A DNA stretch of 64,000 nt, from positions 62,001 through 126,000 of IMG/VR virus record IMGVR_UViG_3300032053_000002, one strand, 5' to 3'. A program made the translations under genes and the position numbers. Positions within the stretch are counted from its first letter, which is position 1. Each line of letters starts with the position of its first letter. The notes beneath the pieces are model-generated. The model saw nothing but the letters and a program-made list of their open reading frames with translations. It did no database searches and was not told the DNA's origin. Shown one piece after another: positions 1,291 through 50,995 of this stretch.

Positions 1291-1324
1291 AAAAAAAAGA
1301 AAAAGGGGGACAATTTGTCCCCCC
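1291..1324 (-). terminator. Rho-independent terminator after Ro60 gene
   Basis: GGGGGACAA/TTGTCCCCC hairpin followed by a T-tract on the minus strand. Confidence 0.85.
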
Positions 1325-1330
1325 GTTGAT

Positions 1331-3019
1331 TTAGAATTTATCACTAATGAAATCGGACATTATTGTTGGAACGTTTGTATCGAAGCCAACTACATCGAGT
1401 GCGGAAGTATCCATCGGATCCGCTATCGTAAATTCGGTGCTCGTCATTCCGACAACAATAAGTTTCACGTCATGCCCAACTTGGTCTCTGTATTGTTTCA
1501 TTGCTTGAGTTGGATGAATTTTACCTGCCCAAGTTTCGCAATCCGTATAAATAACAATCGCGTCAAAATCCTTTTTGTTATTTTTCGCCCAAATTGCTGG
1601 CAATGCGCAATCAGTTGCTCCAAACGGTAATCCGTTAGTATAATCCGTTATTTCGTTCAAAGACATTCCTGAGTGAACCTTTAACTCGGCGACGTTTGAT
1701 TGCCCAGATAACCAATCTCCTCCAGTGAATCCGATAATAGCGTGATTCTTTTCAGTTCTCATCGTTACCAATGCGAGAGCCGCAGACGCTTCTCTCGGAG
1801 AAAGGTTTAGAATGTTAGCAACACCACCATTAGACATTGAACCGGATACGTCAAGAGCTAACAATATTCTTTTCCCGGTCGGTTCAACATATTTGAACGC
1901 TAAATAAAACGCATCGTTCAGCGCTTTAACAATTTGCGGAACAACATTCCATTGACCAGACCCGCGCATACCGTGACCAGATTCGTAAGTTTTCAGCGCC
2001 ATCAAAATCGCAACAGGATGGATTCTTGCCTTACGCAAATTATCTTCGTTGGTGATTTTATCCACGACAAAGTTTATTTCAGTGAAGTTTCCAGATTCCA
2101 AAATACCGTGTTTGGATAAGTTACCCAGATTACGAATAAGAGCCGTCATGGGAGTTTTTGGCAACAGAGTTTCCCAGACTTTCTTTCCCATGAATTGAGT
2201 CGGAATTGCTTCTCTCGGAATGTTGTATTGGTTTATTAATGCAACGATTTCGTCTTCAGTTGTCGCCTTTTTCGCTAACTCGAATGCGTAAATTAAAGGA
2301 ATATCTTTCACGTCTTCAATGGTATGCGGAAAAGTTTTTTCAGTGCTCTTATCTTTCATCAGTCTTTCGCCACCAACTCCGTGCGTCATCCACGCGAATG
2401 CGAGATTGAATATCCCATCCGTCGCTTGAGCGTGAGACAATCTCAATAAGTCTCGGTGAGACCATCCATCGCGAGATTGATATTTAACGGCCTGGAGTGC
2501 TAAAGAATCGATATTCTTTTCAGTATACCATTTAGCAACTCCATTTCTTAAACCGCGGCCCCACCCACGAAATCCGTTCACGTATTCGGCGAAATGAAAT
2601 AGATGAGTTCCGATTCTGGCGACTTTTGTAAGATTTTCTAATGCATATTTTTTCGCCACGTCGCTACCAAATCCGACTACCATCGCTAGCGCGAACAATG
2701 CCGGGTCGTTGTTTGGAGCACGCCCACTTTCAGACACTTCTACGATTCTATCGACTAATTTTTTCGCCGTGTCTTGCGTTTTACAGTTGTCGATAAGAGT
2801 TTTAATGTTATCCGCATTTTTTACCGTTAACTCTTTCGCGGTTGCGTAATAAGTTGGCTGATCGCTTCCCAGAATTAAAAAGCGATCAAGGACTTTCCAT
2901 TCATCCAATTTGAAAACCACGCCTCCGGCATAGTTTTTAGCCATGTCTTTCTCACGACCTGGAATTACCTGTCGTTGAGAAGTTTTTTTAGTGTTGTAAT
3001 GTTTTTGGTAAGTTTGCAT
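1331..3019 (-). CDS. rsr: Ro60/Rsr TROVE-domain RNA-binding protein (TROVE + vWA)
   Basis: FLILGSD..TYY, RIGTHLFHF, KYQSRDGWSHRDLLRLSH, MTALIRNLG, ALDVSGSM and TDCETW (MIDAS) motifs; 562 aa. Confidence 0.96.
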   Translation of the reverse strand: MQTYQKHYNTKKTSQRQVIPGREKDMAKNYAGGVVFKLDEWKVLDRFLILGSDQPTYYATAKELTVKNADNIKTLIDNCKTQDTAKKLVDRIVEVSESGRAPNNDPALFALAMVVGFGSDVAKKYALENLTKVARIGTHLFHFAEYVNGFRGWGRGLRNGVAKWYTEKNIDSLALQAVKYQSRDGWSHRDLLRLSHAQATDGIFNLAFAWMTHGVGGERLMKDKSTEKTFPHTIEDVKDIPLIYAFELAKKATTEDEIVALINQYNIPREAIPTQFMGKKVWETLLPKTPMTALIRNLGNLSKHGILESGNFTEINFVVDKITNEDNLRKARIHPVAILMALKTYESGHGMRGSGQWNVVPQIVKALNDAFYLAFKYVEPTGKRILLALDVSGSMSNGGVANILNLSPREASAALALVTMRTEKNHAIIGFTGGDWLSGQSNVAELKVHSGMSLNEITDYTNGLPFGATDCALPAIWAKNNKKDFDAIVIYTDCETWAGKIHPTQAMKQYRDQVGHDVKLIVVGMTSTEFTIADPMDTSALDVVGFDTNVPTIMSDFISDKF

Positions 3020-3059
3020 GATTCGACCCTCCTCCGATAAAGATAAAGGTTAATTGTTC

Positions 3060-3347
3060 TTACTGATTATTTATTATGTTTTCGTTTATTATGTTTTCGT
3101 TTAAAGCACATTCTATTTTCGCAATTGTTTTCAGTGTGAGATTCGCGTTTCCCGCCAATATATCATCTAACCGAGATTCTCTCATTTTAAGTTGTGTTGC
3201 GAATTCTTTTTTGTTAATCCCCTTATTTTTTAATATATTAAAAATTCTTATTGCAATGTCACTTTGTATTTGAACATATCTTTTTATTTCAGGTGGTACA
3301 TTTGCAAGAGCCTTTAAAAACGCAGATTTTGTGTCGTACAATTTCAA
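3060..3347 (-). CDS. XRE-family helix-turn-helix protein
   Basis: KGINKKEFATQLKMRESRLDDILAGNANLTLKTIAKIE HTH pattern. Confidence 0.8.
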   Translation of the reverse strand: MKLYDTKSAFLKALANVPPEIKRYVQIQSDIAIRIFNILKNKGINKKEFATQLKMRESRLDDILAGNANLTLKTIAKIECALNENIINENIINNQ

Positions 3348-3734
3348 ATTACCTTTTGTTATTTATTTTTTAATATTTTGCAAGCGATTTCTTTTTTTCT
3401 CACACACTCGGGGCAAACATATTCGTATTCATCTTCATTGAAGTCGTCACCCTCTAATATTATTTTCTGGTCTTTACAATTCGCAATGTCTTTTAGTGCG
3501 CGTTTTAGTTTTCGGTTTTCATCACTGAGTTCCATAATTTGTCTTCCTGCTGCGAATAGTGGTTCTTCTTGTTTTCTTCTTTCTTTACTTTCTTCTTCAG
3601 AAAGATGTCTATCTTCTGGTTCTATTAATCCAACACACATATTTATGTTTCTCCTATTTATGCTATAGCGCTCCCACCACTAGTGGTTTTTAACTATTTA
3701 AAATTAAAAAAGTTCCCCGAATAATTAAATATTT

Positions 3735-3971
3735 TTATATCGTCGCCCAAACTATCCATCCGAATATATTAGATAATAAGAAGATAACCCACAAAGTCAA
3801 CGCCGACCATTCTCGTTTTCTTAACGCCCAATAAATCCAGAAAAAGTTCGAGAATATCCAAACCGGCCAACACCAAATAATCTTAAACGCATTGAGAATA
3901 ATGCCGATCAAAGATAATGATGTTGCAATCCATCCAACAATTTTTAATTTTTTGATTTGATTTTCTTCCAA
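3735..3971 (-). CDS. Small PnuC-like membrane protein
   Basis: GWIATSLSLIGIILNA..WCWPVWIFSN; start moved to TTG 3971 (GGAGG upstream) because the tracked start lies inside the Y RNA. Confidence 0.6.
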   Translation of the reverse strand: MEENQIKKLKIVGWIATSLSLIGIILNAFKIIWCWPVWIFSNFFWIYWALRKREWSALTLWVIFLLSNIFGWIVWATI

Positions 3972-3990
3972 GAAACCTCCGCAAAAATAA

Positions 3991-4141
3991 ATATCGAACA
4001 AGATACGGTGACGACTATGGCCTTTCGGCCAGGCGGACGCTCTACCCCTGAGCTACGGTCGCTAACTAATAGTCTGACCGGCGAAGACTTGAACTTCGCG
4101 ACATTCTGCATAGGATAATCATCAATCCATCGGCTCGATAT
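3991..4141 (-). ncRNA. yrlA: YrlA-type Y RNA (circularly permuted tRNA mimic with Ro-binding stem)
   Basis: ATATCGAGC-C-GA pairs with TT-GTTCGATAT (bulged C); order T-arm (GCGAAG TTCAAGT CTTCGC), loop-closed acceptor (CGGTC/GACCG), D-arm (GCTC AGGGGTA GAGC); about 1 kb upstream of rsr. Confidence 0.88.
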
Positions 4142-4152
4142 ATCAAAGAATA

Positions 4153-4209
4153 GTGAACAAGTAATCTAATAACGGGAGTCTGAATGATAACCGTTATTAT
4201 TCGGCTCAC
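4153..4209 (-). ncRNA. Short Y-like RNA (YrlB-like), copy B
   Basis: GTGAGC-C-GA / TT-GTTCAC stem; upper stem TAATAACGG/CCGTTATTA; GGTTATC motif. Confidence 0.75.
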
Positions 4210-4219
4210 CACGTTCCAG

Positions 4220-4293
4220 TTGCGGGAGCAAGAATCGAACTTGCGTTTGTACGGCTTATGAGACCGTGCTGGCACCACTCCAGTCATCCCACA
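4220..4293 (-). tRNA. tRNA-Met (CAT)
   Basis: Cloverleaf; ACGGT CT CAT AA GCCGT. Confidence 0.9.
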
Positions 4294-4307
4294 ATATAAA
4301 ATAAATT

Positions 4308-4367
4308 GACGGATAATTTGCTGAAAAGCGCTTTTCTCTGACGGTAACGTTTCTCTATCGACCCATC
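4308..4367 (-). ncRNA. Short Y-like RNA, copy C
   Basis: GATGGGT-C-GA / TT-ATCCGTC; GAGAAACG-TTACC ... AAAAG-CGCTTTTC. Confidence 0.65.
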
Positions 4368-4430
4368 AAAATCCCGAATCCGTATTTCTACGAACTCATT
4401 ACTGTTCCTGCACATGGCAGGTCAGCTAAA

Positions 4431-4850
4431 ATAAAAGAGTGGTGAGATTAGCATTTACTCACAAGCCTGAACCCGGACAGATTTTTAGTAGCACACCAGT
4501 TAACAGGCGTCCCGGTTAACTTTATATGGTGGAGAGAACCAGCGTCTCTCAACATTCACTAGTAGTAGCTATGTATGCCAACAAGTGGGGGATTTTAGCA
4601 AAAGCACCGCCTTTTTCGAATGAACCCCCGGAGTTGACCAACTCCCGAGAAAGGCGTCTACTTATCTGTGCGAATCGTGCAACCAACGAAAAACTTTTTC
4701 AAGTTTGTCGCCGTACTTTACCTACCTACATAGGTATTCAGTCACACTCATACTCATCAAATCCGAACAAATATGTAGAACCGATTCTACATAGCTAAAT
4801 AGCATAGTACGGTTTCGATGAGTTTCGTCGCCACGCAGGGCGACAAATAA
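4431..4850 (-). ncRNA. Unidentified large structured RNA(s)
   Basis: No credible minus-strand ORF; several perfect stems and crossing pairings. Confidence 0.55.
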
Positions 4851-4870
4851 TTTTCAAAGAACAAAAAACT

Positions 4871-4973
4871 GACGGATAAAAGTGGACAACGAGATTGGCG
4901 AGCGTCACGTCGTGCTTCATCGCACGGCTTAGCCGTGCTTTCTATTGAGATAACGTTGTTCCGACGACCCATC
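4871..4973 (-). ncRNA. Y-like RNA, copy D
   Basis: GATGGGT-C-G / T-ATCCGTC terminal stem identical to copy C; ACAACG-TTATC; GCACGGC/GCCGTGC hairpin. Confidence 0.6.
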
Positions 4974-4990
4974 AAATTTATATTTATAAA

Positions 4991-6757: not shown

Positions 6758-7936
6758 TCATAGTTTAAATATGGCTTTCTTATCGTCCAGCATCCCAAAT
6801 ACGACCGCTATAACTGATTGTTTTTTATCCACGATATAATAATAAACATCTATCGGATTTTGAAATGTCCTGGATTCACAATTTTTATACAAAACATCTT
6901 TTCCATTTTTAAAAATTTCATCATACCTAAGCAATCTTCTCATATTTTCATCATACGATACATTAAAGTGATTTTTCGCCTTCGTTTTCATCGGGCGACC
7001 AATAATGTCTGCGCGTTTCAACCCGGTCACTTTTTCAAACGCCTCATTCGCGTCTAATATGATATAATCAACTATATTTCCGTCCTTATCGTATATTAAT
7101 TTTTTATAAACGATTGGATTGAGCGACCTATTAAATAATGTGCGATATTTTGTTTCTTCCTGTTTTAATTTTCCCGCATAATACTTTTTATCAGAAATAT
7201 CTTGAATTAACGCAAGAAAATAAGTAGGCTTCCCACTATCGCCTTTAATGAGAGTGGTTAAAACACTTACCCAGATATAAAATCCGTCTTTTTTCTTGTA
7301 TCTTTTTTGAACCTCAATATAATCTCTATTGCCAGATAATAATTCTTTAGAGATATAATTAACCGTCGCCTCATCTCTTTTATATGTTATATCGTGGGGC
7401 GACAATCCTAACAAATCATTTTTTGAATACCCCAGTAATTTACAAAACGATTCATTGACATCAACATAAATACTGTTTAAATCAATAAACGCGATTCCTA
7501 TTCCAGGATTATTAAATAACTTATCAAATTTATATCTTTCAACTTTTTGACCTTCGCGAGTCATTATTTTTTCTGAAATGTCCGAGCCCATCAATACTAG
7601 ATAATTTTTATCGTTCTTTATAATAATAGAAAAGGAAAAGTTTAGTAACAAGATATTACCATCTTTATTCACCATAAATATATTTTTCTTTTCTTTATTT
7701 TCAGATGAATTAAACATAGTTTTTAAAGACAAGAAAGTTTTTCCAACATCTTCAGAATAAATAAAATTAGTAAAGTCTTTCCCAACTATCGGCTCGGAAT
7801 AACCTATAAACTTAATTGCGTTATCATTCACCAGTTCTATATTATAATTTTCATTCAACACAAAAATTATTAGGTCAGACCCATGAAAAATGCTACTATG
7901 TATATCTAGTGCATCTATTTTGTCCATGTTATTCAA
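6758..7936 (-). CDS. Multi-PAS-domain protein with no output domain
   Basis: Three PAS repeats (VNDNAIKFIGYS; VNESFCKLLGYS..RYKKKDG.YIWV; ANEAFEKVTGL). Confidence 0.85.
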   Translation of the reverse strand: MNNMDKIDALDIHSSIFHGSDLIIFVLNENYNIELVNDNAIKFIGYSEPIVGKDFTNFIYSEDVGKTFLSLKTMFNSSENKEKKNIFMVNKDGNILLLNFSFSIIIKNDKNYLVLMGSDISEKIMTREGQKVERYKFDKLFNNPGIGIAFIDLNSIYVDVNESFCKLLGYSKNDLLGLSPHDITYKRDEATVNYISKELLSGNRDYIEVQKRYKKKDGFYIWVSVLTTLIKGDSGKPTYFLALIQDISDKKYYAGKLKQEETKYRTLFNRSLNPIVYKKLIYDKDGNIVDYIILDANEAFEKVTGLKRADIIGRPMKTKAKNHFNVSYDENMRRLLRYDEIFKNGKDVLYKNCESRTFQNPIDVYYYIVDKKQSVIAVVFGMLDDKKAIFKL

Positions 7937-8719: not shown

Positions 8720-9301
8720 TTAAACTTTTTCTCGCTCTCGTTTCATCATTTGTTCTATAACTGCATGCATCCAACATTGTGCGGTATATTCAATATATTC
8801 AAATACAAAAGGTTTCCCCTTTATCATAGAATACGCATTAGCTATTTTTTGCGGATGAAACTTTCCCACGTTCTTCATGACGCCATTCATATATACCGTA
8901 TAAATATCGCCACTTGTTTCAGGACCGGAATACAAAATGGCTTCCTGATTATATTTTTTTCCCAATTTTTTCGCCTTACTTAAATCAATGCCGATAACAA
9001 ACAATGATGGCTCGATTACTTGTTCTTTGGACTTTTCATCTTTCCAATACCCCGTTAGCCGAACGAACCCCAGCTGCATTGAACGAATAGTATTTTTTAA
9101 TTTACTAAACAATTCAATGTTTTCTTGTTCGGGCATTTTAACTCCTTCGGCATCATATTCTTTCCACGAGGTCAATATTGCGAATCCAATTTTGGTCGAA
9201 TCTTTATAATGTTGATACAGTCTATTTAAAGACGCCTCGTTTACTTTTTTGAAGTTCCCGTTTAGTTTATATTTTACAATATCAGAAAAAGATACACTCA
9301 C
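8720..9301 (-). CDS. Conserved phage protein, paralog 1 of 3 (DUF3293-like)
   Basis: EASLNRLYQH, FAILTSW, LGF..L.GY, E.SLFV, LGKKYNQEAILY shared with 31911-33072. Confidence 0.7.
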   Translation of the reverse strand: MSVSFSDIVKYKLNGNFKKVNEASLNRLYQHYKDSTKIGFAILTSWKEYDAEGVKMPEQENIELFSKLKNTIRSMQLGFVRLTGYWKDEKSKEQVIEPSLFVIGIDLSKAKKLGKKYNQEAILYSGPETSGDIYTVYMNGVMKNVGKFHPQKIANAYSMIKGKPFVFEYIEYTAQCWMHAVIEQMMKREREKV

Positions 9302-31910: not shown

Positions 31911-32498
31911 TTACAAAATTTTTATCCACTCTGAAACAAGATCCCGTTCTTTTTGGTAAATATAACTTGTTGGAAAATCCAGTATTAGTCTTTCAGCAAC
32001 AAACGCGAATTTTGCGTCCTTCTTGGAACGTTTTATCAGTGAAGAGAACGCGGCTTTAACTGTCGTTGGATTAAAAGTTAAAGTGCTCTTATCACGTTTG
32101 AAATTCATAAGACGTTTTCCCACACCAACATCGTTTCTCGCGCCAACCAGAGAAAATTCACTCGCATCTTTCCAGATAACAGATTGTTGGCTATATTTCT
32201 GCGCCAGTTTTATGGCGTCACGTTCTTTAATTTCAGGAATGAAATAACTTTTCTCTTCAGCAAATTTTTCTCCGTCATCCGTCTTATATGAATATCCGCT
32301 ATTCATTTCTATAAAACCATATCCGAGTTTTCGTATATCTTTCGCCAACGTCTTATGATTCTTCTCATCGTTTTCATCGTCTAAATATGCCGATATGATA
32401 GCAAAAGACGTGTTTGGATTGTTGATGTGCTGCCAAACTCTTGATAACGAATTCTCTATAAATAAATTTTTCAGTAATAAACTTTTACTTTTATTCAT
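31911..32498 (-). CDS. Conserved phage protein, paralog 2 of 3 (DUF3293-like)
   Basis: ENSLSRVWQH, FAIISAY, LGYGFIE. Confidence 0.7.
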   Translation of the reverse strand: MNKSKSLLLKNLFIENSLSRVWQHINNPNTSFAIISAYLDDENDEKNHKTLAKDIRKLGYGFIEMNSGYSYKTDDGEKFAEEKSYFIPEIKERDAIKLAQKYSQQSVIWKDASEFSLVGARNDVGVGKRLMNFKRDKSTLTFNPTTVKAAFSSLIKRSKKDAKFAFVAERLILDFPTSYIYQKERDLVSEWIKIL

Positions 32499-33072
32499 TT
32501 ATTTCCTCATAAACGGTATACCACTTCAACGGTTCGTCCCGGTGATATGCCATTCTATTAAAAGATGGCGACTCTCTTTCTTGCAATCTAAATAGAAATT
32601 TTCTACCACGATGCGACCCCTTTAATAAAGAAGAAAAAAAGTCCTTTAATATTTTAACATTAAAATCGTAATTGGATTTTCCAGATGATTTAATAAATCT
32701 TTTTAAAATCTCGCCTATTCCGGAATTCATATTAGTTCCTATTTCAATAAATTCATCTTTATCTTTATACAAAACCGAATATTGATCATACTTCTTTCCT
32801 AACTCCACCGCTTGATTTCTACTGATACCGGGAATAAATAAAGAAGATTCTTCTGTAAATCCCGATTCTTCCTGATAACCACCTTTCAGTTCTATAAATC
32901 CTAATCCCATTTTTCTAACCGCTTTTTTTAATTCCAAATATCTTTCTGCATTTTCTTTATCTGAAAATTCTATTCGGGACGCCGAGATAACTCCGAAAGA
33001 CGAGTCGGCATCTTCTATGTGCTGAAATATCCTTGATAATGAACTTTCTTTAATTAAACTTTTCATCTTCAT
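32491..33072 (-). CDS. Conserved phage protein, paralog 3 of 3 (DUF3293-like)
   Basis: ESSLSRIFQH, FGVISAS, LGFIELKGGY, LGKKYDQYSVLY. Confidence 0.7.
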   Translation of the reverse strand: MKMKSLIKESSLSRIFQHIEDADSSFGVISASRIEFSDKENAERYLELKKAVRKMGLGFIELKGGYQEESGFTEESSLFIPGISRNQAVELGKKYDQYSVLYKDKDEFIEIGTNMNSGIGEILKRFIKSSGKSNYDFNVKILKDFFSSLLKGSHRGRKFLFRLQERESPSFNRMAYHRDEPLKWYTVYEEINE

Positions 33073-33691: not shown

Positions 33692-34111
33692 CTATTTAAA
33701 AATTTCTTTATGAATACAAACTACATTATTTTCGTTTGTTTTTTCATCATATTGACTAACATATACGCTATATGATTGATATTCTATTCTTATACTCATA
33801 ACCGCGTCGCGAATCATATGACTCTTAATTATTTTAGTAAACCAATCCACCAATTCCTGTTCATTATCATAATCTCTTAGGTCGCCCCAGAAATTTACAG
33901 TATACGCTGCAAGATGATGATCTTCCGGATTTTCCCATATATTTACTTGAATAGACCCTTCGCTACCACATGGAACATTGCATTCTTTCCACTCTATTTC
34001 GTCATCAGTAAAACCACAAGTCTTAAATTTTGAATTCAAATCCGTATAATCACTCATTACTTTCAAATGATCAATTCTTATTGAACCATTAACATGCGTC
34101 CATTGACTCAT
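33692..34111 (-). CDS. Hypothetical phage protein
   Basis: MSQWTHVNGSIRID, PCGSEGS. Confidence 0.7.
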   Translation of the reverse strand: MSQWTHVNGSIRIDHLKVMSDYTDLNSKFKTCGFTDDEIEWKECNVPCGSEGSIQVNIWENPEDHHLAAYTVNFWGDLRDYDNEQELVDWFTKIIKSHMIRDAVMSIRIEYQSYSVYVSQYDEKTNENNVVCIHKEIFK

Positions 34112-35115
34112 ATTATTACCACCTTATTAAATTCGTTGTATAAAGACCGTTTACCCTTTTCAAACAATTTGTATTTTTTGCGAACAACTCCATCAGGAAC
34201 ATTGGAACGGTCTATACCTTTTTCAATGTCGTCTTTGATACGTCTAATAGCAACTTCAGGGTCTACTTCAAACACAACCGCTATTTTTCTGCAATCATTA
34301 AAATCAGACATAAATTCTATTCTTAACCACTTATCAACACTGGTCGCGTCTAAATAGGTTTTTCCGTATTTTAGCAAATCAACTTTCATTCGCACTTTAG
34401 TCTCTTCCCAAACGTCATCGTTTGCGGCTTGATTGGAAATATTGCCAGTAAACTCACGGCGAATTTCATCCGGGCAAACAATATATTTTTTATCTATGTT
34501 TTTCAAATAACGAGATTTTCCAGATCCTGGAATACCAACCATAACATAAACTTTTTTACTGGAATGTCGTTGTTTAAAATGAACAAACATTTCTTTAATT
34601 TTATTTTTCTTCAAATCGAAATTGGTAGCAAAAGTCGCCCACGCCGCTCTAGATTGTCCTTTATCCATCTGAACAAATCGTCTTAAATCTTCATCTTGAA
34701 TTTTATCATAATCAGAAACATTTTTTATAGAGTGATTCATATGTTCTGCAATTACTTTTACGGTAACATCATAATACTTAATATAATCTTTGTATTCTTC
34801 AATAAATTCTACAGACTTTTTCGCGTGACCGTACGAATAAATCTTTTTTTCGCCAACGGTGGTTTTCCACGCTTTTCCGACATCATGTAAAAAAGCCGCT
34901 TCGATTAGGTTATCGTACCCAAACATTTTAGTTACGTAAACCATATTAAAGGTATGCAACAGTGCATCAAACTCAGGATGATAATAGGTGGATTGCGGAA
35001 TACCATCCAACGCATTCACAACTTTGGAAGTTATGAAGTATTGGCGCATTTCGTATTTCCACGCATCAAAATCAGAGTAATTTGCGTTGTATAGTATGTC
35101 GTAAAAAGTTTTCAT
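34108..35115 (-). CDS. HD-Pnk RNA end-healing enzyme (HD phosphoesterase + polynucleotide kinase)
   Basis: HT..V, AAFLHDVGK (HD); GIPGSGKS P-loop, CPDEIR, LDATS. Confidence 0.85.
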   Translation of the reverse strand: MKTFYDILYNANYSDFDAWKYEMRQYFITSKVVNALDGIPQSTYYHPEFDALLHTFNMVYVTKMFGYDNLIEAAFLHDVGKAWKTTVGEKKIYSYGHAKKSVEFIEEYKDYIKYYDVTVKVIAEHMNHSIKNVSDYDKIQDEDLRRFVQMDKGQSRAAWATFATNFDLKKNKIKEMFVHFKQRHSSKKVYVMVGIPGSGKSRYLKNIDKKYIVCPDEIRREFTGNISNQAANDDVWEETKVRMKVDLLKYGKTYLDATSVDKWLRIEFMSDFNDCRKIAVVFEVDPEVAIRRIKDDIEKGIDRSNVPDGVVRKKYKLFEKGKRSLYNEFNKVVII

Positions 35116-35405: not shown

Positions 35406-36005
35406 TTAAACTATTCGTTCTAATAATTTCTTTTCTTCCAATACTCTATGCAATATCTGAATAATAAACAACTCGAATTTTTTACCCGCGTTAGAATATA
35501 AATACATTATAGCTTCAATAGGCGTTTTTGCTTTTCGATAAGGTCTTTCAACAATCATTGCATCATATACGTCCGCAACCGCCAATACTTGAGATAACCC
35601 GTTGAATTTATCTCCACTTAACCCATCCGGATAGCCAGACCCATCCAGTCTTTCATGATGCTGAAGCGCGATTTCGGCTTCATCTAAATAATTTAATGAT
35701 TTTAATATTGTATGACTATATTTCGGGTGTTTTCTCATTTCTTCAAACTCGACATCTGTTAGTTTTTCGCTCTTAAAAATAATGTGATTCGGAACTTTAA
35801 TTTTGCCAACGTCATGATAATATGCGGCGCGAACTAATTTATGAGTTATATCTTTTTCGAATTTTAATTTCCCCGCCATATCATTTACCAGACGCCCAAC
35901 TCGCAACGAATGCTGCATAGTGTATTCTGAATCCTCTACTGCCTTCAAGAGACTCATGGCGGTTAAAAGACTTTCGTAATCCCGAATATATTTTACATCT
36001 ATCAT
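35406..36005 (-). CDS. HD-GYP domain protein
   Basis: HSLRV, HDVGK, HHERLDGSGYP, VADVYDAM...RPYRKA. Confidence 0.95.
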   Translation of the reverse strand: MIDVKYIRDYESLLTAMSLLKAVEDSEYTMQHSLRVGRLVNDMAGKLKFEKDITHKLVRAAYYHDVGKIKVPNHIIFKSEKLTDVEFEEMRKHPKYSHTILKSLNYLDEAEIALQHHERLDGSGYPDGLSGDKFNGLSQVLAVADVYDAMIVERPYRKAKTPIEAIMYLYSNAGKKFELFIIQILHRVLEEKKLLERIV

Positions 36006-36017
36006 CCATTTTCTCGC

Positions 36018-37193
36018 CTATTTTTTCATCAATAAAAACTTAACCTTTTTAGAACCCATCTCACCAAGAACCGACTTCGGGTCTAATTCAAAGTTATCTA
36101 CCATTCTAAAAATTATTCCGGTTAAAGATTTATTAACATTTTCTAAAACCGCGAATGCTAACTCTTTACGAGACATGGTTTTGGACATTCCTCGGTAAAT
36201 CTCTCCTTCTTTCAATAAATAGTCAACCAAATTAGAATATTTTTCCTTTAATGATTTATATTCTTCGCGGACTTTGTCAGGAAGTTTATTTAAGTATACC
36301 TCAAATTCTTTCATTTCATTATTCATTAAAACATTTATTAAATTATTAGTTATTCCTTCGCCAGTTGCGACATGATGTAACTGAATGTATTTCGGAGATT
36401 TAATTTTAACTCTTCCGATAACTTCATCTTCTTCAAACTGAGATACAACAAATCCTTCAAAGTCGTTCCCGTTCAGATTTTCTTTATCTGCAATATTAGA
36501 CAATTCCATTATATCATTTACGTCTTTTAAATCGAAAAGTTTAGGAAATCTAATAGGCAAGCCATTAAAAACACTTTCCATCTTTTTTCGAATAGATTTA
36601 TAGAATATGTTGAAATCTTTAGAAGTTTCATTTTCTTTTAATCCAATAAATACCAATTCTTTTTTAGAATAATCAACAACTATTCGAGCCGACGAGTGAA
36701 CCAACTCAAACATATAAGTTTTGTCTTGCTCAAATTGAGAAGTTAAGATATTAAAATCTTCTCTGGAAATAATATCAAAAAATAACTCTTCAAATGGAAT
36801 TTTATCAGTAGTAGTCGCGTCTTTAGCATCAATAGTTCCATTGGTTGCAATTCGCCATTTTTCATCATAAAAATAAACTTTAATAATTGAACCATCCACT
36901 TTTTCTATAATATAGGATTTTTCTAAATCTATGTTAAATGCATGAGATTCTCCGTAATTCCAGAATTTGAAAAATGGATTACATACTATTTTCCAGGTAC
37001 CATTTTCTAAAATTATTCCGCGAGATTCGCGAACGATTGAATTGGAAAAATCAGAATTAAATTGATTATATTTAAATAAAACAAGATTGTTTTTTGCAGA
37101 AATAATAAGATTAAAGGGGTCTTTTTTTAAGTCCTCTATGGCTCTATTTTCCAAGAATTTTTGTAGAGATAACATTGTAATATTTTCTTTCAT
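36018..37193 (-). CDS. T4 Rnl1-type RNA ligase
   Basis: RESRG, KFWNYGE, EKVDGS (motif I), FELV, EGFVV, KIKSPKY. Confidence 0.93.
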   Translation of the reverse strand: MKENITMLSLQKFLENRAIEDLKKDPFNLIISAKNNLVLFKYNQFNSDFSNSIVRESRGIILENGTWKIVCNPFFKFWNYGESHAFNIDLEKSYIIEKVDGSIIKVYFYDEKWRIATNGTIDAKDATTTDKIPFEELFFDIISREDFNILTSQFEQDKTYMFELVHSSARIVVDYSKKELVFIGLKENETSKDFNIFYKSIRKKMESVFNGLPIRFPKLFDLKDVNDIMELSNIADKENLNGNDFEGFVVSQFEEDEVIGRVKIKSPKYIQLHHVATGEGITNNLINVLMNNEMKEFEVYLNKLPDKVREEYKSLKEKYSNLVDYLLKEGEIYRGMSKTMSRKELAFAVLENVNKSLTGIIFRMVDNFELDPKSVLGEMGSKKVKFLLMKK

Positions 37194-43475: not shown

Positions 43476-43946
43476 CTATTTGATAAACTTGTTTTTGTTT
43501 TGTTCTTCGATTCGAAATCCTTCACGTATCTCCATCAGCATTTTTCCTAGCATATTATATCCGAGACCTTTCTTATTTCTCCCCCAGTAAAAATCTTTTT
43601 CGCTTAATTCTATTATTTCCGCGGTTCCCGTTGATAATAATAAATTTCTAAAACATGGAATACGAAATTTTGTTTTTAACGCCTCGAGCATTATGAAATC
43701 TTTTTTTTCGTTCCAGTTTTTTCTTATATACGGCCGTAATTCTTCTTTCCACGCAGCTTCCTTAGCGAGTATAGCCGTCAGCTTCATCCGTATGTATTCT
43801 TCCCACTCCGTTCCAGCAAACTTTTGTGATTGATAGAAATTTTCTACGGATGAATAATTCTTACCATTTATCTCTAATGAAACGGGATAAAAGTTACTGA
43901 ATTCGCCGTACGGATCTTTTAATTTGCTAAAGTATATCGTTTCCAT
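43476..43946 (-). CDS. NADAR-family protein
   Basis: FSNFY, SVENFYQSQKF, KF...LLLSTG...E.S..D.YWG, NMLGKMLM. Confidence 0.93.
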   Translation of the reverse strand: METIYFSKLKDPYGEFSNFYPVSLEINGKNYSSVENFYQSQKFAGTEWEEYIRMKLTAILAKEAAWKEELRPYIRKNWNEKKDFIMLEALKTKFRIPCFRNLLLSTGTAEIIELSEKDFYWGRNKKGLGYNMLGKMLMEIREGFRIEEQNKNKFIK

Positions 43947-46200: not shown

Positions 46201-46458
46201 ATTAAAAGATTGCTTCTATAACCAGGATTCTGTATGGTATTTCTACCACGGTAATCATTTCTCTACCGGCGTTCTACCCGACCGTAAGTCCCGCTTACAA
46301 ACCGGTCTGCTCGAACTTGCACGAAATCGTTCATTCGTTTCGCGTGGTACCGCGATATACTATAAAACTATCTCCCACACCAAGCGGCCCGTGTCCTGAG
46401 TTTCCTCTCGCGCCACTTATCGTGGTCTGCGAGCGATTACCCGAAACAATCTTTTAAT
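46201..46458 (-). ncRNA. rnpB: RNase P RNA (compact)
   Basis: P1 AAAAGATTGTTTC/GAAGCAATCTTTT; P2 GGTAATCG/TGATTACC; P3; GAGGAAACTCAGGA pairs with ACAGAATCCTGGTTAT (P4 with bulged U); P15 with GGGTA loop; P19 TGGTA-GAAA-TACCA. Confidence 0.92.
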
Positions 46459-49492: not shown

Positions 49493-50995
49493 CTATTTCG
49501 AATCCAAAACATCTCGTACCCGTTTAAGTATAGTCAGTGGAGTAACCGGTTTTTCAATAAAATTAATATTTTCGTGTAGTATTCCATAATGTACTATTGT
49601 ATTATCAGTATATCCTGACATATATAATGTTTTAATTTTTGGGTATTTTTTGATTAGATTTTCTACTAATTCTACTCCATTCATTTTTGGCATAACGACA
49701 TCAGTTAATACAATGTCGATTGGAACATTAAGTGTTTCCACTTTTTCTAATGCGATCACACCATTTGAAGCCATAATTACGGTATATCCAGAATTTTCTA
49801 AACGGTCTTTTATAAGATTTCTAACTTCTAGTTCATCTTCTACTAATAATACTGTTTCGGTTCCTCTTATATCGTTTTCATTTATTTTATCAACCAAAAA
49901 GCGTTTTACGGCAATATCATCAGTTGAAGGAAAATAAATATAAAATGTTGCTCCGTGCCCAGGTTCACTTTCTGCCCAAATATGTCCATTACTTTGTTTA
50001 ACAATGCCGTATACCACAGGCAAGCCAAGACCGGTTCCTCTTCCCAATGGTTTAGTCGTAAAAAATGGTTCAAATAATCGATCCTTTACTTCTTTAGTCA
50101 TTCCTACGCCAGTATCTGAAATAGAAATCAAAACAAATGAACCTCTTTTATCAAATGGTTCGATGGATTCAACGTTTTCAGTTTTTATTACCAATTTTCC
50201 CCCATCTGGCATAGCATCAATCGCGTTTATACAAATATTTATTAAAACTGATTGAAATTGAACCGTATCTATTTTAATATTTTTAATATCTGGGGATAGA
50301 TTTAAAGAAAAATCAATGTCTTCTTTTATAAACTGACTTAAAAAATCTTTTTGTTCGGATAAAAATTGATTTGGGTCAACAGTTTCCATTTTCATCATTT
50401 GTTTTTTACTAAATGCTAAAAGTCGTTTTACAAATTTTTCTGCCCGTTCACTCGCACGAAAAATTTTTCCAACTTTAACTTGTTCATTTGAATCTGGAAC
50501 TAATTTATTCATTAGCTCTTCGCTATATCCTTTTATAACGGTTAAAATATTATTAAAATCATGTGCGATACCGCCCGCTAATAAACCAACGGCTTCTAAT
50601 TTAGAAGTATTTTTTAATTGGTCTTCTAAAACAGTTTTTTCATTTTCAAGGCACGTTATATCTCTAACATAAACAATCCCAAGCGTTTCATTGTCATGAT
50701 TAAAAAATTTTGCATATACTTCGCATGAAAATGAACTACCATCTTTTTTTCTATTAATAGTTCTAGTAAAGAATTTTCCTGTTTTTTTACCGATTTCCAT
50801 TAATTTAGGCAGAGTCATTTTATAATATTCTTCCGAAGTTAAATCATGTACATTTAATATAGATTTAAATTCTTCGCGTGTATATCCGTATAATTCAATG
50901 GCAGTTTGATTACAATCTAAAATAGTACCATCTAATTTTTCTAAAAAAATTGCGTCCGGTGACGTATCAAGTATTAAATCAAAAAATCTTTTCAT
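49493..50995 (-). CDS. Hybrid sensor histidine kinase (PAS-HisKA-HATPase-REC)
   Basis: GIAHDFNN H-box, NAIDAM, DTGVG, FEPFFTTK, GTGLGL; receiver LVEDE..TDVVMP..EKP. Confidence 0.96.
   Translation of the reverse strand: MKRFFDLILDTSPDAIFLEKLDGTILDCNQTAIELYGYTREEFKSILNVHDLTSEEYYKMTLPKLMEIGKKTGKFFTRTINRKKDGSSFSCEVYAKFFNHDNETLGIVYVRDITCLENEKTVLEDQLKNTSKLEAVGLLAGGIAHDFNNILTVIKGYSEELMNKLVPDSNEQVKVGKIFRASERAEKFVKRLLAFSKKQMMKMETVDPNQFLSEQKDFLSQFIKEDIDFSLNLSPDIKNIKIDTVQFQSVLINICINAIDAMPDGGKLVIKTENVESIEPFDKRGSFVLISISDTGVGMTKEVKDRLFEPFFTTKPLGRGTGLGLPVVYGIVKQSNGHIWAESEPGHGATFYIYFPSTDDIAVKRFLVDKINENDIRGTETVLLVEDELEVRNLIKDRLENSGYTVIMASNGVIALEKVETLNVPIDIVLTDVVMPKMNGVELVENLIKKYPKIKTLYMSGYTDNTIVHYGILHENINFIEKPVTPLTILKRVRDVLDSK

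Follow-up and report, generated by a model that had tools for sequence, protein, structure and literature searches.

Layout of the Ro60 locus

The DNA stretch analysed here, referred to as the window, comprises 64,000 nucleotides (positions 62,001 to 126,000) of the IMG/VR record IMGVR_UViG_3300032053_000002, an uncultivated viral contig which with 292,723 bp has the size of a jumbo phage, as a preliminary description of this DNA had stated. The window contains a gene for a predicted Ro60 protein and, upstream of it on the same strand, a YrlA-type Y RNA of 151 nucleotides (nt) in tandem with a short YrlB-like RNA; together, these elements very probably represent a phage-encoded Ro60/Y-RNA ribonucleoprotein module. 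On this strand, the predicted Ro60-binding scaffold of bacterial and phage Y RNAs recurs in at least four small RNAs; it consists of a terminal helix, an unpaired C followed by G-A (5' strand GAGC-C-GA), and an inner helix ending in (G)GUUAUC. Among these RNAs, only 4141..3991 has the permuted tRNA module that defines YrlA, while 4212..4150, 16214..16149, and 21572..21485 consist of the scaffold only and are YrlB-like.

The Ro60 gene, the YrlA-type RNA, and the short Y RNAs are all located on the minus strand, as are all of the 44 tRNA genes predicted in the window by ARAGORN. Reading 5' to 3', the locus begins with a variant hairpin RNA, a large structured RNA, and a further hairpin, followed by tRNA-Met, the short Y RNA, the YrlA-type RNA, three small open reading frames (ORFs), and the Ro60 gene (Table 1). 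The tRNA-Met and the short Y RNA probably originate from one precursor transcript. The 3' end of the 151-nt RNA (3991) is separated from the Ro60 start (3019) by 972 nt, which is less than 4 kb, and overlaps the listed TTG start of the 88-aa PnuC-like ORF. Just past the Ro60 stop codon, a terminator-like hairpin has a 9-bp stem with six G-C pairs followed by a T-rich tail. With 8 kb of the window as query, a nucleotide search against the phages in GenBank gave zero matches.

The Ro60 protein

The 562-aa ORF contains a TROVE domain (PF05731, E-value 4.1e-36) spanning residues 28-341 and a Ro60-type von Willebrand factor A domain (vWA_Ro60, PF25045, 4.4e-59) covering the full profile (1-165). 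In a phmmer search against the sequences of the Protein Data Bank, residues 14-560 align end to end with solved Ro60 structures, with E-values of 1.8e-112 for RO60 (9nen), 2.5e-111 for Deinococcus Rsr (2nvo), and 2.2e-108 for Xenopus Ro60 (1yvp), and a MIDAS-type DVSGS motif aligns with DVSAS of 9nen and DVSGS of 2nvo. The Pfam domains together with the full-length alignment identify the predicted protein as a canonical ring-type Ro60, in agreement with the full-length TROVE-vWA protein noticed before. The divergent Ro60 of a Thermus phage (9kop/9l5y) is matched with an E-value of only 6e-04.

Relatives of this Ro60 are encoded in 361 GenBank phage records with a best identity of 44%. The carriers are mostly phages of Mycobacterium, Streptomyces, and Gordonia but also include the 469-kb Sinorhizobium phage Phosso. 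The nearest proteins in a metagenome collection have 62-67% identity and are encoded on contigs of up to 309 kb, followed by proteins of bacterial metagenome-assembled genomes with about 50% identity.

The YrlA-type RNA

The ends of the 151-nt RNA form a helix of 9 bp, AUAUCGAGC with GUUCGAUAU, which includes one G.U pair and is followed by the unpaired C4132 and then by a G.U and an A-U pair. The closing helix with its bulged C reads GAGC-C-GA / UU-GUUC. An upper stem of 10 bp (4124..4115 with 4018..4009) ends at a junction bearing an extra GNRA hairpin, GGCC-GAAA-GGCC (4030..4019), and the analogue of the anticodon stem has four of five pairs, GCAGA (4109..4105) with UCCGC (4037..4033). The core begins with five unpaired bases and continues with a T-arm (4099..4081; 6 bp, 7-nt loop UUCAAGU) and an acceptor-like stem (4080..4056; 5 bp, 15-nt closing loop), which is joined by UA to a D-arm (4053..4039; GCUC, loop AGGGGUA, GAGC). 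This order of T-arm, loop-closed acceptor stem, and D-arm is seen in the sequence itself and in the alignments to two covariance models, the Rfam model for YrlA (RF02553), whose alignment covers these three elements, and the phage-trained model R1 described below. A tRNA that is cut open at its anticodon loop and whose acceptor end is closed would have this arrangement, which is known as the design of YrlA (PMC4201824). The minimum free energy fold (-52.2 kcal/mol) keeps these helices, with z = -3.0 and two of 200 shuffled sequences folding equally well. Both the RNA with bulged-C ends about 1 kb upstream on the Ro60 strand (4141..3991) and the circularly permuted tRNA with its anticodon-stem strands were found as the preliminary description had them.

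Model R1 is a covariance model constructed from 17 Ro60-linked viral YrlA RNAs, with the window left out. Two degenerate pattern scans of viral contigs, whose matches were mostly adjacent tRNA pairs, also yielded about 25 loci with a Ro60 gene (identified by tblastn) beside RNAs of similar build, and the training sequences were taken from these loci. In the alignment of the 17 RNAs, GAGCCGA, the UU..C of UUAUC, the T-loop, and the D-arm are invariant, and RNAalifold predicts 25 consensus pairs, 15 of which are compensatory. R1 matches 3991-4141 with 59.6 bits (E 5.8e-13 in the 64-kb window) over model positions 1-139 of 139 and with exactly the ends given in the preliminary description. This score falls inside the range of 55-93 bits obtained for matches beside other Ro60 genes that were not part of the seed. 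As a positive control, R1 recovers the YrlA of mycobacteriophage Ava3 with 78 bits at 160 nt upstream of the Ro-like gene, and the Rfam model matches the same RNA in Ava3. In an alignment of 34 sequences including the window, 95.4% of the cells pair and 22 of the 25 pairs change on both sides; whichever measure is used, the observed value is not reached by any of 500 shuffles, nor is it approached by a slid register. Based on the R1 match, the Ava3 control, and the covariation within the class, the 151-nt RNA is, as judged from its sequence, a YrlA-type Y RNA. Close relatives do not contribute to this covariation because no YrlA-type RNA was found in their loci L003-L012 by regular expression, Rfam, or R1 (L numbers denote other viral loci).

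Scaffold-only Y RNAs

The RNA of 57 nt with the same bulged-C stem that had been noticed directly 5' of the YrlA-type RNA is present at 4209..4153, at a distance of 8 nt. Its helix reads GUGAGC-C-GA / UU-GUUCAC, and its scaffold, GAGCCGAA...GGUUAUC, is invariant in the class, with no tRNA module. None of 200 shuffled sequences folds equally well (z = -3.35). When R1 is run with filters off, it aligns the scaffold alone with 29.8 bits, corresponding to an E-value of 3e-07 in 1.4 kb and 1.4e-05 in 64 kb. With R1 scores of 59.6 and 29.8 bits for the two RNAs, the tandem of a YrlA-type and a short YrlB-like Y RNA upstream of Ro60 on the same strand is upheld. YrlB itself has been reported to be conserved within Salmonella enterica only (PMC4201824), so that homology of the window RNA to Salmonella YrlB would not be expected. 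As an operational label for an RNA that has the common motif and lacks a full tRNA module, 'YrlB-like' is a fair description.

Two further short Y RNAs of the GAGC-C-GA type, at 16214..16149 and 21572..21485, are located 12-18 kb from Ro60 and 0-2 nt 3' of tRNA genes. Both contain GCCGAACG, an exact match to the published 5' motif GNCGAAN0-1G, and the remaining short RNA has GCCGAAUA. The closing helix of 21572..21485 is GAGC/GCUC, with a G-C pair where the other RNAs have G.U. All short Y RNAs score 28-30 bits with R1 and lie on the coding strand in gaps without genes. GAGCCGA occurs 10 times in the window, threefold the expected 3.3, and none of 100 shuffles reaches 10. In Ava3 and many viral loci, YrlA likewise has scaffold-only hairpins at its sides, one example being the 72-nt RNA at L176:6598-6669. 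Two more generic descriptors were dropped as too noisy in AT-rich DNA: helix + CGA + UU gave 100 matches compared to about 50 in shuffled sequences, and helix + CG + UUAYC gave 62 compared to about 33.

Proposed function and alternative interpretations

Because three of the Y RNAs begin 0-8 nt past a tRNA, they may be released from tRNA-containing precursors by tRNA end-processing. Each Y RNA would then bind to the outer surface of the Ro60 ring via its GAGC-C-GA strand, and the variable module would set the action of the particle by recruiting an effector. By analogy to Deinococcus, Salmonella, and the Thermus phage phiLo, the most likely action would be to gate the central cavity of Ro60 and to tether a 3'-5' exoribonuclease such as the PNPase of the host. 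Structured or damaged RNAs would then be handled during infection, with tRNAs as plausible targets in a genome with 44 tRNA genes. Since PNPase is the effector documented in Deinococcus, Salmonella, and phage phiLo (PMC4201824, PMC12135203), an RNA-degradation particle of the RYPER type is the first choice.

Several observations weigh against a Ro60/Y-RNA module with a YrlA-type RNA. The Rfam model assigns 22.3 bits to the 151-nt RNA, compared to a gathering score of 69. R1 detects no YrlA-type RNA within 5 kb of Ro60 in the four closest relatives (62-67% identity), so that members of this Ro60 lineage need not have a tRNA-like RNA. In the window, three small ORFs stand between the Y RNAs and Ro60. 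At the published 5' motif, the 151-nt RNA reads GCCGAUGG, which is GNCGA with U as the sixth base, a position with A in 10, U in 4, and C in 3 of the 17 viral YrlA RNAs. In addition, the G.U and A-U pairs past the bulged C and the two bases preceding the 3' strand vary across the YrlA class. According to another reading, the 151-nt element is the decayed junction of two tandem tRNA genes, a 3' half followed by the next 5' half, and is unrelated to Ro60. tRNA genes are abundant in the window, and two of its ordinary tRNA-tRNA junctions score 22.6 and 21.8 bits with the Rfam model. As junctions and candidate score alike, this model provides no evidence either way. Its gathering score is reached at none of 13 Ro60-linked viral loci, and the YrlA of Ava3, with 36.1 bits, is under the threshold as well; the cut-off is too strict for phage members and the failure is uninformative. 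With R1, in contrast, tRNA junctions fit only the central part of the model (positions 44-108) with at most 38.9 bits, whereas the candidate is matched from end to end. Furthermore, the flanks of the 151-nt RNA form helices of 9 and 10 bp, its two acceptor strands are paired with one another and connected by a loop, and its scaffold with GAGCCGA and UUAUC is the one found invariantly in Ro60-linked RNAs from unrelated phages. The full-length R1 match and the flanking helices thus disfavour a tRNA junction, which is considered highly improbable. The comparison with YrlA covariance models that had been proposed for this RNA has a divided outcome, with failure of the Rfam model and full-length recovery by R1.

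Two alternatives accept the RNA and differ in its role. The preliminary description had coupled Ro60 to surveillance of tRNA damage through an Rnl1-type ligase and an HD-Pnk protein acting instead of RtcB. In such an analogue of the Salmonella rsr-yrlBA-rtcBA operon, the ribonucleoprotein would sense or handle cleaved tRNAs, cooperating with the Rnl1 ligase and the end-healing HD-kinase, and would counter anticodon nucleases of the host. Genes for Rnl1, HD_5, and the HD-kinase fusion are indeed present, along with the 44 tRNA genes and an RNase P RNA-like gene, and the window has no RtcB-sized ORF. In Salmonella, damaged tRNAs induce an operon that comprises rsr, the Y RNAs, and RtcB/RtcA (PMC7790460), a survey of jumbo phages groups TROVE proteins with RNA-repair systems as a published hypothesis (PMC7824862), and a Thg1-like gene is located 4 kb downstream of Ro60 in one relative. 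However, what links the repair genes to Ro60 here is their presence in the same genome, as they are located 31-34 kb from Ro60 and outside its transcription unit. The Ro60 neighbours in related phages are genes for RNase T, HSP20, and a ResIII helicase and not for ligases, the documented partner in the studied bacteria and in phiLo is PNPase, and experiments are not known to connect Ro60 with ligation in any system. The coupling to Rnl1/HD-Pnk is not supported beyond this co-occurrence, and this reading is regarded as rather unlikely. Even less probable is that the tRNA-like Y RNA mainly diverts host factors that bind tRNAs (for example nucleases, modification enzymes, or defence sensors) in the manner of a decoy or sponge, with Ro60 only stabilising it. 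The predicted structure would suit this role, as all tertiary positions of the tRNA elbow are retained (T-loop UUCAAGU, D-loop with GG, equivalents of U8/A9), and bacterial YrlA RNAs are substrates of tRNA enzymes (PMC4201824), but three scaffold-only RNAs without a tRNA module would be left unexplained. The Ro60/Y-RNA particle with an exoribonuclease partner is preferred.

Other structured RNAs and genes of the window

Both hairpins flanking the large structured RNA have a terminal helix of GAUGGGU-C-G with AUCCGUC and an inner GUUAYC motif. They belong to a pattern termed 'type B', which across the clade reads NNNGGGU-C-G / AUCCNNN. Related hairpins with different outer bases (closing helix UUUGGGU / AUCCAAG) adjoin Ro60 in four related phages. 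For the RNA of about 103 nt, RNAalifold on four sequences predicts 28 pairs, eight of them compensatory, with two helices kept. In the MAFFT alignment of the shorter hairpin with its relatives, the window sequence is misplaced. As R1 gives only marginal scores of 9-17 bits, the assignment of 4369..4306 and 4975..4869 as variant Y RNAs is tentative.

The large structured RNA between these hairpins weakly resembles the Rfam family manA (RF01745), which matches it with 34.3 bits (E 1.4e-06 in 2.4 kb) compared to a gathering score of 55.2; relative to the model it has an insertion of 182 nt, and the relatives score 18-20 bits. RNAalifold on five phages predicts 87 pairs, 46 of which are compensatory. 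Among the loci examined, this RNA is confined to contigs of this clade, each time beside Ro60. In the relatives it is located just upstream of Ro60 in a leader-like position, with a hairpin and then a terminator preceding the start codon of Ro60; in the window, its distance from Ro60 is about 1.4 kb. The manA-like RNA could be a leader or riboswitch-like element or a partner of Ro60. Upstream of Ro60, the tRNA-Met homologue at L007:4304-4421 has, compared to L003, a 44-nt insertion in the anticodon loop, which includes a T-loop-like GGUUCGA.

At 19950-20086 on the minus strand, a tRNA-shaped RNA has a perfect acceptor stem of 7-8 bp, a D-arm, and a T-arm. In place of the anticodon arm it has a stem of about 75 nt, in which the motifs GGGUCG and GUUAUC occur. 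R1 scores a stretch overlapping it with 42 bits. ARAGORN run with introns on 20100..19930 gives an unconvincing tRNA-Ile, in which a 55-nt intron occupies a non-canonical site and the anticodon stem is poor. The RNA may be an un-permuted chimera of tRNA and Y RNA or an odd intron-bearing tRNA.

It has further been considered that the Ro60 of this clade might be served by a whole repertoire of partner RNAs and not by one or two. This repertoire would comprise canonical Y RNAs in tRNA arrays that are released by tRNA processing, the clade-specific variant scaffold GGGU-C-G / AUCC, the tRNA-shaped RNA 20086..19950, and the manA-like RNA as leader, partner, or substrate. Such an extension is speculative and rather unlikely.

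A reduced homologue of class A RNase P RNA (250 nt) is encoded at 46203-46452 on the minus strand and scores 66 bits compared to a gathering score of 100 (E 9e-20). Its catalytic core retains the elements P1-P4, GAGGAAA, and ACAGAAUCC, and the specificity domain has largely been lost. This gene may be relevant to the processing of the 44 tRNAs and the tRNA-like Y RNA. At 12629-12702 and 19704-19779, also on the minus strand, ARAGORN predicts one tRNA whose CUA anticodon would decode amber stop codons and one whose anticodon has four bases (caga). RtcB, RtcA, and RtcR were not found within the 64-kb window. Unusual phage cargo encoded on the minus strand (6758-7936, 49493-50995, 8720-9301, 31911-33072, 43476-43946) includes a PAS-domain protein, a hybrid PAS/histidine-kinase/receiver protein, three DUF3293/SAM-lyase paralogues, and a NADAR-domain protein.

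Table 1. Features of the Ro60 locus, further features of the window, and related features in other viral loci (L numbers)
Feature	Position	Strand	Basis and remarks
Variant Y-like RNA 'type B', ~103 nt, tentative	4869..4975	-	First element 5' to 3'; nhmmer homologues in L003, L007, L004; R1 8.8 bits
Large structured RNA, manA-like, 320-340 nt	4433..4775	-	Second element; RNAalifold, 5 phages; Rfam manA
Variant Y-like hairpin 'type B', ~60 nt, tentative	4306..4369	-	Third element; GAUGGGU-C-GA / UU-AUCCGUC, inner GUUACC; R1 16.6 bits
tRNA-Met (CAT)	4293..4219	-	8 nt 5' of short Y RNA; ARAGORN; Rfam tRNA 42.1 bits
Short Y RNA, YrlB-like	4212..4150 (core 57 nt, 4209..4153)	-	R1 and fold
YrlA-type Y RNA, 151 nt	4141..3991	-	R1 and fold
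88-aa ORF, similar to C-terminal part of NMN transporters (PnuC-like fragment)	3735..4001	-	Pfam NMN_transporter 31 bits, profile 104-174 of 175
93-aa ORF	3359..3640	-	ORF list; no Pfam match
Small helix-turn-helix (HTH; Cro/C1-type) ORF	3060..3347	-	Pfam HTH_3 9.3e-06; between Y RNAs and Ro60
Ro60 (TROVE and Ro60-type vWA), 562 aa	3019..1331	-	Pfam and phmmer
Intrinsic-terminator-like hairpin and T-run	1324..1304	-	Just past Ro60 stop; consensus scan
Second short Y RNA, GAGC-C-GA type	16214..16149	-	2 nt past tRNA-Pro in tRNA array; R1 28.0 bits, E 3.6e-05; fold
Third short Y RNA, GAGC-C-GA type	21572..21485	-	Abuts tRNA-Thr; R1 29.7 bits, E 1.4e-05; fold z = -3.1
HD phosphohydrolase fused to P-loop kinase ('HD-Pnk')	34108..35115	-	Pfam HD 3.5e-06, AAA_33 5.8e-11
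Separate HD_5 protein	35406-36005		Pfam
Rnl1-type RNA ligase	36018..37193	-	Pfam RNA_lig_T4_1 3.6e-20
'Type B' RNAs in relatives	L003:4028-4253, 4263-4368; L007:3937-4167, 4176-4285; L004:4342-4428, 4847-4912; L010:511-574		
manA-like RNA in relatives	L003:4480-4819; L007:4432-4769; L004:4435-4778; L010:97-441		
Y RNA arrays, often interleaved with tRNAs	L214:1321-2240; L234:1720-2240; L131:1250-1736; L154:3114-4557; L124:948-1589; L176:5980-6669		

Significance

The novelty that the preliminary description had implied for Ro60 and Y RNAs in a phage is overstated, since publications from 2014 onwards have described Ro60 together with YrlA in phages, some of them large (PMC4201824, PMC12135203, PMC7824862). 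YrlA-type RNAs beside Ro60 were reported in 22 phages in that year (PMC4201824), a later source counts the large phages CcrColossus and Bacillus phage G among them (PMC12135203), and the complex of a phage Ro60 with a Y RNA has been solved (PMC12135203). With the window, the catalogue gains a well-supported Ro60/Y-RNA module of an uncultivated phage of 293 kb and several compact RNAs for binding studies, and the picture of Ro60 biology is left unchanged.

The Rfam YrlA threshold misses phage YrlA RNAs altogether, including those of mycobacteriophages, while the phage-trained model recovers dozens. The Y RNA arrays in viral contigs contain YrlA-type and scaffold-only RNAs, and as none of them reaches the Rfam gathering score, current annotation pipelines miss them. 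Likewise, the usual search rule of 'within 4 kb of Ro60' would miss Y RNAs that are 12-18 kb away and directly 3' of tRNAs in arrays. In the lineage closest to this Ro60, canonical YrlA was not found near the gene, and Ro60 is instead accompanied by a large manA-like RNA and hairpins of a variant scaffold. If the manA-like RNA controlled or bound Ro60, this would place an orphan family of riboswitch candidates in a functional context. The variant scaffold, the Y RNAs in tRNA arrays, and the manA-like RNA are leads and not results.

Comparison with known systems

In metazoan Y RNAs, the pairing around the bulged C is GGUC-C-GA / UU-GACU, with which GAGC-C-GA / UU-GUUC of the window appears to be isosteric. 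According to summaries of the Xenopus Ro60-Y RNA structure, these RNAs likewise have a terminal helix and a bulged C followed by G.U and A-U pairs (PMC4201824, PMC12135203). In contrast to the window RNAs, metazoan Y RNAs have no tRNA-like module, while the window RNAs have no evident poly-U/La site.

Uncultivated viral contigs have the same scaffold beside Ro60 in arrays of 2-5 copies per locus, for example at L214, L234, L131, and L154, but the Ro60 proteins of these array loci are only 37-48% identical to that of the window. The closest Ro60 relatives (62-67%) differ in that a canonical YrlA-type RNA was not found near the gene.

The rsr-yrlBA-rtcBA operon of Salmonella Typhimurium also combines Ro60 with a tandem of the tRNA-like YrlA and the short YrlB, both of which have the 5' motif GNCGA (PMC7790460, PMC4201824). 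It differs from the window in its RtcB/RtcA/RtcR functions, which were not found in these 64 kb, where the ligase is of the Rnl1 type and distant from Ro60. The Thermus phage phiLo encodes a Ro60 with the upstream Y-like RNAs Yrl1 and Yrl2, and for this phage, binding and a ternary complex with the PNPase of the host have been shown, making it the best experimental precedent for the proposed mechanism (PMC12135203). The phiLo protein, however, is very divergent from the window Ro60 (E 6e-04 compared to 1e-112 for canonical Ro60).

Mycobacteriophages of the Bxz1 type are the group of the first report on phage YrlA (Chen et al. 2014, PMC4201824). As in the window, a YrlA-type RNA between scaffold-only hairpins is located upstream of their Ro-like gene on the same strand, near tRNA genes. 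In Ava3 (species Bxz1), R1 scores 78 bits for YrlA and 26.5 and 21.2 bits for the flanking hairpins, with the same scaffold and permuted tRNA module. In contrast, the proteins are only 41% identical, three small ORFs separate the RNAs from Ro60 in the window, and the window RNA has an extra GNRA hairpin and U at position 6 of the motif. The window also differs in having further Y RNAs 12-18 kb away within tRNA arrays.

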